Of a DNA stretch of 64,000 nucleotides, positions 17,001 to 18,809 are shown piece after piece. How positions within the stretch are numbered: position 1 is the first letter of the stretch; every line of letters starts with the position of its first letter. A program made the position numbers and the translations under genes. Under the pieces are notes generated by a model. That model was not told where the DNA came from. It worked only from the letters and a program-made list of their open reading frames with translations, and did not search any database. Origin of the DNA: Anthoceros angustus (Eukaryota > Plantae > Anthocerotophyta); assembly GCA_010909165.1 (NCBI GenBank), contig VJWM01000260.1, forward strand, positions 123,007-187,006. Direction: 5' to 3'.

Positions 17001-18809
17001 CGTGCATATTCCAGTTCGCCACATTTTGCATACATGTCCACCAGGCAGTTGCCAACAAACAAGTTGGCAGGAATGCCACTGTGCAACACATCACAATGCA
17101 CCTCTCTGCCAGATTCCAAGTCCGCTGCAAATGCACAAGCTTGAAGGGCAGCTACAAAGACGTGAGCATTTGCCTCCACACCTGAGCTACGCATCTCATG
17201 GTACAGTTGTATGGCCTGTTTAGGTTTTCCATGTTTAGCATGGCGGAGATTATGGAAACCACATGAAGGCATCTGGTTTGCCCACCCTGGTGAACACATC
17301 CATGGCCTCCTGTAGCCTACCACCACATGCATACATGCGCAAGATATGGTTCCCCAAGAATGCATTCGACTCATACCCAAGTTTGACGGTGAGATCATGA
17401 ACTCGTCGCCCCACAACCAAATCCTTCTTGACCAAGCTGTGAAAAGCCCTGCGCGCATCTTCCAGATTGCCACATTTTGCATACATGTCCACAAGGCAGT
17501 TGCCCACCAGCGTGTTCTCTAGCTGTCCTCTTTCCACAATCTGTGAGTGCAGCTGCCTGCCCTTCTGTATGGCACCAGCACTTCCGCAGGCCTGCAGAAG
17601 GCAAGCAAAAGTAACATGGTTTCCCATAATTCGGCCCTCCTGCTCCATCTCTCCATACAGAACAAGCGCCTCTTGACCAAGACCATGATTTGCATACCCA
17701 GCTATCAAGGCCGTCCATGTCACCACATCCTTTGAGGGCAAGCTGTCAAACACCCGGCGTGCATATTCCAGTTCGCCACATTTTGCATACATGTCCACCA
17801 GGCAGTTGCCAACAAACAAGTTGGCAGGAATGCCACTGCGCAACACATCACAATGCACCTCTCTGCCAGATTCCAAGTCCGCTGCAAATGCACAAGCTTG
17901 AAGAACCGCTACAAAGACGTGAGCATTTGCCTCCACACCTGAGCTACGCATTTCATGGTACAGTTGTATGGCCTGTTTAGGTTTTCCATGTTTGGCATAG
18001 GCGGAGATTATGGAAACCCACATGAAGGCATCTGGTTTGCCCACCCTGGTGAACACATCCATGGCCTCCTGTAGCCTACCACCACATGCGTACATGCGCA
18101 GAATATGGTTCCCCAAGAATGCATTCGACTCATACCCAAGTTTGACGGTGAGATCATGAACTCGTCGCCCCGCAACCAGGTCCTTCTTAGCTGCACATAG
18201 TTTTAGCACAGAATAAAAGAGAGACTGAGAAATAGGGCAGTGTGTCTGCGCCAGAGATTCCATGGCTCCAACGGCCTCCGCAAGCTTCCCTTGTTGACAT
18301 AACGTGCTCACGGTTACAGCCGATACGACGCCCATTTCCGATCCAGCACGTCTGCCTGGCTTAGTCTTATTCGGAGAGCTGGACTTGGAAGGGGAGGCAC
18401 CGTTTCCCATCTGCATAGTCAAAGAAAAGAGCTGATCATCCACCCAAGCTGGCTTCAAAATGTTGTTCAACCAGAGGACCTCGCCGGACACCTTATGCCG
18501 GAAGTCAGGCGAACCAGAGCTCTTCTTACCTCCCCTGTCATCCCACCACATGGGAGGGTCCAGAAAAAATTGTCGCCACAAGAGTTCCTGTTCTTGCAGT
18601 TGCTGCTGGCCACCACCATCGCTGGACAATCCTTTCCCAGCCATCCATTTTTTCGGAAGTGCTGGGTTCATGCCGGTGCCGACGGAGGCTTGCTTGTTTG
18701 ACGGCGGTTCACTACCTGCGGTGAGGTGAGGAGGAGCTCCTCGTTGAGAAGCTATACACCCAATAATTTGTTGTGTCCACAACGGATCCGTTTGCCATAC
18801 TGTTACCAT
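14086..18809 (-). CDS. PLS-class PPR RNA-editing factor with E1/E2 and DYW:KP (GRP-type) domain plus N-terminal PDF motif; as assembled, interrupted by two frameshifted internal duplications (17420-15919). Possibly a pseudogene or mis-assembly.
   Basis: ORFs 17250-18842 and 14086-16203 give P-L-S triplets (VVTWTALIAGY / TFACLLKAC / VGNCLVDMYAKCG), then KKPAVAGIEV, HAEKLA, CSDCH and terminal CSCKGRP. First ATG at 18809. Joining 17421 to 15918 gives one uninterrupted frame of ~1073 aa. Confidence 0.88.

Follow-up and report, generated by a model that had tools for sequence, protein, structure and literature searches.

An OSB-type PDF domain precedes PLS-class PPR repeats at a probably decaying DYW:KP editing-factor locus of Anthoceros angustus

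Layout of the locus

We analysed a 64,000-nucleotide stretch of Anthoceros angustus DNA (the window), in which an OSB-type PDF motif had been predicted at 18429-18581, in one frame with the repeats of a PPR-DYW:KP editing factor. The quoted 51-amino acid peptide was recovered exactly at this position, though from the minus strand, and translating 18429-18581 on the plus strand gives an unrelated sequence. The peptide makes up residues 88-138 of an open reading frame (ORF) of 530 amino acids (17250..18842, minus strand), counted from a GTG codon; counting from the first ATG, at 18809, gives 519 amino acids. This ORF encodes a presequence of ~75 amino acids, the PDF domain (18405..18593, minus strand; residues 84-146 as delimited with an OSB-only PDF profile, enclosing 18429-18581), a Ser/Pro/Lys-rich linker (18333..18401, minus strand; residues 148-170) and, beginning with the first PPR-like helices, PLS PPR repeats that run to a stop codon at 17250-17252. 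No stop intervenes between the PDF and the PLS-type repeats, confirming that the two share one frame. Pfam recognised PPR families in the ORF (E 6.8e-39) and returned PPR/TPR-type families only, with residues 1-200 blank; it holds no PDF model.

A separate ORF of 705 amino acids (14086..16203, minus strand) encodes PLS triplets, an E motif (14464..14652, minus strand; residues 518-580; Pfam PF20431, positions 1-63 of 63) and a DYW:KP deaminase-like domain (14089..14367, minus strand; residues 613-705; Pfam PF14432) ending in GRP. Pfam E-values were 9.3e-75 for PPR, 3.8e-14 for E_motif and 7.1e-32 for DYW_deaminase. In the translation, KKKPAVAGIEV replaces the PG box and is accompanied by HAE (in HAEKLA), CSDCH and the C-terminal GRP, and the 306-bp tandem repeats of the ORF correspond to a 102-amino acid PLS triplet periodicity. 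The ORF lacks a start by which it would itself be connected to the PDF.

These domains, namely a PLS array followed by an E motif and a KP-box DYW domain with terminal GRP, are those of the GRP subgroup of PPR-DYW:KP editing factors of the hornwort U-to-C type, as defined by Ichinose et al. 2022 (PMC9478123). While the PLS triplets, E motif, KP box, HAE, CSDCH and terminal GRP are common to both, the window gene adds an N-terminal PDF beyond the described architecture and is split by frameshifted tandem duplications. Consistent with this assignment, the 705-amino acid ORF is 57-62% identical to two intact GRP-type proteins (P0087 and P0175).

Repeat families and a unit alignment resolved one intact PPR tandem unit of ~756 bp in frame with the PDF (unit 1; 17430..18200, minus strand), and the unit alignment together with a frame map placed two further, degenerate copies of this first PPR block (~750 bp each), unit 2 (16685..17441, minus strand) and unit 3 (15940..16696, minus strand). 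Units 2 and 3 have three 1-nt deletions in common that are absent from unit 1, the first of which (~17260) produces the stop at 17250-17252. Unit 2 has further indels of its own (-2, -5, +1, -1 and -4), and an extra 1-nt insertion in unit 3 moves reading into the frame of the downstream 705-amino acid ORF. The frame map and unit alignment revealed at least four frame changes between 17260 and 16200, and in the locus as assembled no single open frame reaches from the presequence to the DYW domain. In the searches each ORF piece was used by itself, with no reading through stops. Because the stop at 17250 and the indels separate the PDF ORF from the E-DYW:KP ORF, the assembled locus encodes at most a presequence, a PDF and ~9 PPR motifs, without the catalytic domain. 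The single PDF+PLS+E+DYW:KP protein of the original prediction is therefore not encoded here, whereas the architecture itself exists in the close relatives P0087 (753 amino acids) and P0175 (950 amino acids), which are intact, GRP-type, single ORFs on their own contigs.

Repeat families and pairwise alignments further identified a 1.76-kb tandem duplicate (20157..21925, minus strand) of 18392-20160, which spans the 5' flank and the first ~150 codons and has the junction microhomology CCAAGTCC. It contains a second PDF copy (20176..20345, minus strand; pairwise alignment and PDF profile) with ~99% DNA identity over the PDF-coding stretch, whose frame is broken by a 1-nt (G) deletion at ~20300, and the PDF profile matched it in two pieces, one per frame, with E 3.5e-14 and 1.1e-3. 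Four more indels lie in the coding part of the duplicate, upstream of 20176..20345. The presequence of P0087 (residues 1-84) had no detectable match anywhere in the window.

As part of our best explanation, the locus at 14086-18842 (minus strand) rather probably represents a PLS-class PPR gene for a GRP-type DYW:KP editing factor with an N-terminal PDF, of which this copy is decaying, and we consider this gene copy very likely to be non-functional. It is improbable that the gene is intact in the organism and encodes one long PDF+PLS+E+DYW:KP protein, with the stop, the frameshifts and perhaps the tandem units being assembly or polishing errors in a repetitive PPR array. Such errors are suggested by the tandem repeats, which are 96% identical and difficult to assemble, and by the many duplicate differences that are homopolymer-length changes; in the coding part of the 1.76-kb copies, five of the differences are indels, of which four alter a homopolymer run by a single base. 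However, the three 1-nt deletions are found in units 2 and 3 and not in unit 1 despite identical sequence context, and one of them falls outside any homopolymer. That they are common to two units indicates inheritance through duplication and not random error, and the -2, -5 and -4 deletions of unit 2 also argue against an intact gene. Moreover, the ORFs of 2.1 kb and 1.6 kb at the locus are uninterrupted, as is a 1.5-kb WD40 ORF at 30491-32044, and indel errors are therefore not frequent overall.

Identity of the PDF domain

An exhaustive phmmer search with a 66-amino acid stretch against 1.84 billion proteins gave 520 matches at E<=1e-3 (122 at E<=1e-10), including Populus OSB1 (E 2.9e-21), and by BLASTP the window PDF is 48-50% identical to each of the two PDF motifs in that protein. 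A search with a profile of OSB PDF motifs, originally proposed as a check, was run with 25 motifs, every one of which came from a protein with an additional match to the OB-fold part of OSB1. This OSB-only profile matched ORF residues 84-146 significantly (E 3.9e-24, 80.6 bits; HMM positions 3-65 of 66); in a six-frame search of the window, its sole other match was the broken upstream duplicate. In an alignment of 67 motifs, 14 positions are conserved at 90% or more, and the window PDF retains every one of them (W10, P17, W20, D22, R24, K27, P33, D34, F35, K38, L44, W45, P52 and W54); it carries the signature LWxxFFxxPxxWWDNRxxKxxPxxPDFKHKxTGExLW...PxWV over ~50-60 amino acids. The proposed likeness to the OSB motif is thus genuine by phmmer, the OSB-only profile, BLASTP and conserved columns alike, and on sequence grounds the window peptide is a bona fide OSB-type PDF domain. 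A chance resemblance is ruled out by the profile E-values. A word-index protein search with the window motif returned eight candidates, none of which scored, and one with the Selaginella protein P0103 returned the self-match alone; both blanks reflect the method, as the exhaustive search gave 520 matches.

OSB proteins (Arabidopsis OSB1-4 / PTAC9) consist of a transit peptide, an OB-fold/SSB-like domain and one to five C-terminal PDFs. The PDF domain is what the window ORF has in common with them, with the identity to the Populus OSB1 motifs given above; it differs in that Pfam finds no OB-fold and the PDF is single and N-terminal, followed by PLS PPR repeats. The OB-fold part of Populus OSB1 was matched by 51 of the 150 best phmmer matches taken together (by 62 when the initial, looser query was used). 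In the latest survey of the OSB family, inclusion required both an OB-fold and a PDF, and PPR goes unmentioned (PMC13393729).

Predicted fold of the PDF domain

AlphaFold2 (AF2) modelled the motif alone with a pLDDT of 92.8, as a helix, three short strands and a helix. In a model of ORF residues 60-330, pLDDT was 79-91 for the PDF, 93-97 for the PPR helices and below 50 for the linker; the pTM was 0.58, and there was no confident packing of the PDF on the PPR part. The PDF is thus predicted to fold independently, with ~23 disordered amino acids linking it to the PPR superhelix. The linker varies in both length and sequence among aligned PDF-PPR proteins.

A shape search of the ESM Atlas retrieved three PPR/DYW clusters (127, 57 and 63 members; TM 0.87-0.93). 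A cluster with the Pfam SSB family (OSB-like) superposed on the PDF model with a TM of 0.91 and an rmsd of 1.5 over 66 residues, so model superposition predicts the same fold for the window PDF as for the PDF of OSB proteins. The same search also gave two phage clusters (TM 0.65-0.70) and a weak Rad52 match (TM 0.42); we do not claim a Rad52-like relationship. Querying the ESM Atlas by features yielded nothing usable, and a BFVD search gave nothing for the PDF (best E 1.7). Among solved structures, the sequence profile of the PDF had no matches at E<=10, Foldseek with the PDF model reached a best E of 5.5, and VIA-align with the same model a best Z of 3.8, below any meaningful level. Because both sequence and structure searches of solved structures were blank, no known fold can be named for the PDF.

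PDF-PPR proteins in other plants

Among the 150 best of the 520 phmmer matches, 14 are PPR proteins with an N-terminal PDF. Among them are proteins from Selaginella (XP_024517303), Adiantum (KAI5076972 and KAI5061374), Diphasiastrum (KAJ7231026), Sphagnum (CAM6033764) and ORFs of the Pteridium transcriptome, so the co-occurrence of PDF and PPR, which the original prediction had proposed looking for in hornworts, lycophytes and ferns, was found in all of these genera. These proteins have the same order as the window ORF, with the presequence (where present), the PDF, a variable linker, first PPR helices (LCxxGxLxxA) and then PLS repeats. They are annotated merely as PPR or hypothetical proteins, carry one to three PDFs and have differing C-termini; the Sphagnum protein ends in a canonical PG/DYW, and no DYW domain was detected in some of the lycophyte and fern PDF-PLS proteins. 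We found no paper describing a PDF-PPR fusion, in agreement with the original prediction, which knew of no description of this architecture. A comparable theme is seen in the RRM-PPR and MORF-RRM accessory fusions, in which an editing-related PPR protein has an added nucleic-acid-binding or partner domain (PMC13386178); neither 'OSB' nor 'single-stranded' occurs in the text of that paper.

The PDF was present in three of ~30 DYW:KP relatives examined. In P0087 its signature is partly eroded (CWD for WWD and RDF for PDF), and P0177, a close intact GRP paralogue in the same samples, has no PDF and no remnant of one in ~1 kb upstream. Because P0177 lacks the PDF and only these three relatives carry it, the comparison suggests that the PDF is probably dispensable for editing as such. 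The fusion also has no special link to U-to-C editors, given the canonical PG/DYW in Sphagnum and the lack of a PDF in most DYW:KP relatives. PDFs are joined to unrelated partners as well, among them P0048, a kinesin motor, and P0034, which bears the name ICR2-like.

In a tree of 67 PDF motifs (66 columns), whose resolution is too low to distinguish a single old fusion from repeated ones, the PPR-linked motifs require 11 changes, and 17 of the 18 group in the half where the OSB motifs of non-seed plants are placed too. This split of the PPR-linked motifs may reflect taxonomy. Proteins of the GRP type are under-represented in transcriptomes (PMC9478123), a scarcity that, in our reading, possibly fits many silent or dead copies.

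Possible role of the PDF in editing factors

PPR editing factors are usually described as a targeting peptide, a PPR tract and E/DYW domains. Judging by its family, a flexibly tethered PDF in front of the PPR tract could serve as an accessory module that binds single-stranded nucleic acid without sequence specificity. Binding of ssDNA is known for AtOSB1 and AtOSB2 only, and in AtOSB1 the isolated PDF motif is sufficient for it (reviewed in PMC6963530 and PMC4166229). OSB1 and OSB2 are reported to prefer ssDNA over dsDNA or RNA, a preference observed with OSB proteins (PMC6963530, PMC4166229), and OSB1 restricts R-loops (PMC8330923). Because the documented PDF activity is ssDNA binding, we deem it the likeliest role of the domain that it would enrich the editing factor at the organelle nucleoid or on DNA under transcription, where the factor would meet nascent transcripts.

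We think it quite likely, from the family's activity, that the PDF provides accessory single-stranded nucleic-acid binding of some kind; that it would specifically provide ssDNA or nucleoid tethering is a more tentative proposal, which we put at somewhat under even chances. As an overall explanation we favour, with reasonable though limited confidence, a decaying GRP-type DYW:KP gene with a genuine PDF that serves as an accessory single-strand binder. More speculatively, and rather doubtfully, a subset of the editing factors of seedless plants might be coupled to the organelle genome, with the PDF on exposed ssDNA (transcription bubbles or R-loops) and editing taking place co-transcriptionally, an arrangement then lost in seed plants. 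If so, PPR-DYW proteins would be pre-positioned on the gene whose transcript is edited, and MORF/ORRM-type helpers perhaps took over in seed plants. The editing helpers MORF, ORRM and OZ are centred on seed plants.

PPR tracts bind RNA in parallel, the N-terminus of the protein lying nearer the 5' end of the RNA. A PPR-linked PDF that binds RNA and not DNA might therefore grip ssRNA just upstream of the PPR footprint, adding unspecific affinity and holding the site unfolded, a reading to which we give roughly one chance in three or slightly less. The position of the domain agrees with it, as each of the 14 PDF-PPR proteins among the matches carries its PDF at the N-terminus, with the flexible linker directly preceding the first PPR helices; so does the aromatic and basic character of the conserved residues (W, F, K and R), which suit stacking on any single strand. 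Against it stand the reported preference of OSB1 and OSB2 for ssDNA over RNA (PMC4166229) and the many editing factors, the majority, that are without a PDF.

It is very improbable that the PDF of PPR proteins serves purely as a module for protein contacts or sorting, with no part in nucleic-acid binding, docking on OSB, RecA or other nucleoid proteins or affecting import or sub-organellar sorting: although its place directly after the presumed targeting presequence and its fusion to the kinesin and ICR2-like partners would suit such a module, the sole documented PDF activity is ssDNA binding, for which the isolated motif suffices (PMC6963530), and AF2 showed neither confident PDF-PPR packing (at the pTM given above) nor an ordered linker.

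The window locus itself is of modest value, being a broken copy of the design. A conserved PDF in front of many PLS PPR proteins of mosses, lycophytes and ferns and of GRP/DRH-type (hornwort-type) editors nevertheless points to an accessory function that has gone unrecognised, and the domain is unseen in standard annotation because it has neither a Pfam model nor a solved structure. The fusion extends the PDF domain beyond its known range, offers a testable handle on whether editing happens at the nucleoid, and bears on how early land plants handled very large editomes. U-to-C editing has been demonstrated in E. coli and human cells, for designer KP proteins only (PMC9478123), and the PDF is a possible add-on for synthetic PPR editors.

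The motif is an OSB-type PDF in frame with PPR repeats

The peptide that the original prediction identified as a PDF motif of OSB proteins, which bind single-stranded DNA in organelles, matches the minus-strand translation of 18429-18581 exactly; translating the plus strand gives an unrelated sequence. The peptide occupies residues 88-138 of an ORF at 18842..17250 (-), which is 530 aa long when counted from a GTG and 519 aa when counted from the first ATG, at 18809. A presequence of ~75 residues lies ahead of the motif and, in the same frame, as had been claimed, a Ser/Pro/Lys-rich stretch and then PLS-type PPR repeats follow 3' of it. 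The Pfam matches in this ORF were all to PPR families, and none fell on residues 1-200.

An exhaustive phmmer search of 1.84 billion representative proteins with the 66 residues encoded at 18408-18605 (minus strand) returned 520 matches with E<=1e-3, of which 122 had E<=1e-10. A Populus protein named OSB1 by NCBI contained two matching motifs (E 2.9e-21), each 48-50% identical to the window PDF by BLASTP. When 67 motifs were aligned, the window PDF retained 3/3 invariant columns and 11/11 columns conserved to at least 90% (W10, P17, W20, D22, R24, K27, P33, D34, F35, K38, L44, W45, P52 and W54). The original prediction was staked on a match to an OSB PDF profile; a profile of 25 motifs, drawn solely from proteins also matching the OB-fold part of OSB1, matched residues 84-146 of the ORF (E 3.9e-24), and in a six-frame search of the window its only other matches were the two fragments of a disrupted duplicate lying upstream. 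Judged by sequence, the window motif is a genuine PDF motif.

The window locus is interrupted as assembled

A single protein with PDF, PLS-type PPR repeats, E motif and DYW:KP domain had been predicted at this locus, but the PDF ORF ends at a stop at 17250-17252, and the E motif and DYW domain lie in a separate 705-aa ORF (16203..14086, minus strand), behind four to six 306-bp PLS triplets. This DYW domain (Pfam E 7.1e-32) carries KKKPAVAGIEV, HAE, CSDCH and a final GRP, residues that assign it to GRP, a subgroup of DYW:KP reported for hornworts (PMC9478123). The ORF pieces were searched separately, and no protein was read across a stop. As assembled, the locus is predicted to encode at most a presequence, the PDF and ~9 PPR motifs, without E or DYW.

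The intact PDF ORF continues into the first of three ~750-bp tandem PPR copies on the minus strand, unit 1 (18200-17430); unit 2 (17441-16685) and unit 3 (16696-15940) are further copies, about 96% identical. Three 1-nt deletions are common to units 2 and 3 and absent from unit 1, and the first of them produces the stop. Unit 2 has extra indels of -2, -5, +1, -1 and -4, and unit 3 one of +1. We took the common deletions to be real mutations that were later duplicated, because two units share them, the third lacks them although its surrounding sequence is the same, and one lies outside any homopolymer; an assembly fault is improbable. Four tandem 306-bp units at 14920-16137, each one P-L-S triplet and 78-83% identical, show that the PPR array had earlier grown in steps of whole triplets.

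The upstream duplicate (21925-20157, minus strand) is a 1.76-kb direct tandem copy of 20160-18392, spanning the 5' flank of the gene and its first ~150 codons, with an 8-bp microhomology (CCAAGTCC) at the junction. Within the coding part, five indels make up most of the difference between it and the downstream copy, 4/5 of them homopolymer-length changes, and these indels split its PDF over two frames. The indels cluster in the coding part (5 in ~480 bp); the flank of ~1300 bp has 2 indels and ~7 substitutions. Directly upstream of each PDF copy is a short, internally repetitive, hairpin-rich element (18889-19285 and 20648-21110), whose ORFs contain PLGTPSKYRSKRRMLNNHVLINV two to three times, and the hairpin-rich repeat lies no more than ~60 bp from 18842, where the ORF starts.

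Intact PDF-PPR proteins occur in other plants

The predicted architecture exists as an intact single ORF in two close relatives. P0087 (753 aa, on a 9-kb Logan contig from SRR33208241) consists of a PDF (residues 80-140), PLS repeats, an E motif and a DYW:KP domain with terminal GRP, and shares 56-57% identity with each of the two window ORFs; relative to it, the window PPR array holds about 1.6 kb of extra repeats. P0175 (950 aa, SRR33208242) is built in the same order, with 62% identity across the C-terminal ORF. A PDF is likewise present in P0184, a relative of the DRH type.

Among the 150 best PDF matches, 14 were PPR proteins with an N-terminal PDF, in one to three copies each. They include proteins from lycophytes (Selaginella moellendorffii XP_024517303 and Diphasiastrum KAJ7231026), ferns (Adiantum KAI5076972 and KAI5061374, and several Pteridium aquilinum transcriptome ORFs, which place PDF and PPR together on one transcript) and a moss (Sphagnum compactum CAM6033764). 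Several short matches resemble N-terminal fragments of more such proteins. The association with DYW:KP was not specific, as the Sphagnum protein has a canonical PG-box DYW domain at its C-terminus. Nor is the PDF universal among the closest relatives: it was present in only 3 of ~30 DYW:KP proteins examined, and P0177, an intact GRP paralogue from the same samples as P0087 and P0175, had neither a PDF nor a remnant in ~1 kb upstream. From this spread and the PDF-less relatives it follows that the fusion either is old or arose repeatedly, that it is not confined to U-to-C editors and that at least some paralogues can do without it. A tree built on the 66 motif columns did not resolve how often the fusion originated. 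The Logan runs SRR33208241 and SRR33208242 (loci L001-L004) hold intact GRP-type DYW:KP genes with a PDF (P0087 and P0175) and without one (P0177), and would be a good source of intact natural proteins for experiments.

Predicted structure of the PDF

AlphaFold2 with the alignment of 67 motifs modeled the 66-residue PDF as a long helix, three short strands and a C-terminal helix (mean pLDDT 92.8). In a model of ORF residues 60-330, pLDDT was 79-91 for the PDF and 93-97 for the PPR helices, but below 50 for the segment between them (residues 148-170), and overall pTM was 0.58; the models thus suggest that the PDF is a separate module on a flexible tether. Across ten PDF-PPR N-termini, the linker was the least conserved part and the PDF held most of the invariant columns.

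Among solved structures, a sequence profile search gave no match, and searches with the PDF model by Foldseek (best E 5.5) and VIA-align (best Z 3.8) retrieved nothing resembling the PDF. A shape search of the ESM Atlas retrieved three Streptophyta PPR/DYW clusters (127, 57 and 63 members; TM 0.87-0.93) and one OSB-like cluster with Pfam SSB (TM 0.91). The model (m78e94acdd582) also matched two clusters of hypothetical proteins from tailed phages (Uroviricota; TM 0.65-0.70 over 58-62 residues) and, weakly, the bacterial clusters Rad52_Rad22 (TM 0.42) and PcfK (TM 0.45); none of these resemblances was confirmed in BFVD or PDB searches, so that a relationship of the PDF to ssDNA binders of phages or of the Rad52 type is no more than a lead.

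Likely role of the PDF in PPR proteins

PPR tracts bind RNA in parallel orientation. According to passages in reviews citing Zaegel et al. 2006 (PMC6963530, PMC4166229), the PDF is responsible for binding to ssDNA and, in AtOSB1, suffices for it, and OSB1 and OSB2 prefer ssDNA over dsDNA or RNA. OSB1 also restrains mitochondrial R-loops (PMC8330923). At the level of the family, the PDF is likely an accessory module on a tether that binds single strands without sequence specificity. It may, more tentatively, hold the editing factor to exposed nucleoid ssDNA, where it would meet nascent RNA. That it instead grips RNA 5' of the PPR footprint agrees with its N-terminal place and the parallel binding of PPR tracts, and seems somewhat less probable. 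A purely protein-interaction or sorting role is very unlikely. The role is probably of no consequence for the window copy, since its gene is interrupted.

The original prediction knew of no description of the fusion, and a literature search mostly outside subscription journals found no relevant paper joining 'PDF motif' or OSB with PPR or DYW. A 2026 survey of the OSB family selected proteins by OB-fold and PDF and never mentions PPR (PMC13393729), and neither 'OSB' nor 'single-stranded' occurs in a 2026 survey that covered domain fusions of editing factors kingdom-wide (PMC13386178). The finding concerns a PPR editing factor whose accessory domain is unannotated; at the family level it merits experiment, and the window locus is a decayed example.

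Other PDF proteins and neighboring features

The PDF is not restricted to OSB and PPR proteins (P0001, P0004, P0013, P0034 and P0048). Arrays of 8-13 PDF motifs were found in Kingdonia uniflora and the dinoflagellate Effrenium voratum, and the snow alga Sanguina aurantia (a MAG) has five matched PDF stretches. Other PDFs precede a kinesin motor (P0048, 1526 aa) and occur in a Striga protein named ICR2-like. Because reviews restrict the PDF to green plants, the dinoflagellate arrays may stem from contamination or transfer.

Copia-type retroelement fragments (10769-13328, plus strand) directly adjoin the PPR gene on its 3' side, namely an integrase core with an SH3-like domain (10769-11587, +) and an RVT_2 reverse transcriptase (11889-13328, +). 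An uninterrupted 517-aa WD40 beta-propeller ORF lies at 30491-32044 (-), and the 594-aa ORF overlapping it on the opposite strand (30644-32428, +), without a Pfam match, is probably its mirror ORF. A 250-aa ORF at 55260-56012 (-) has a weak Hsp20/alpha-crystallin domain (E 1.3e-5).
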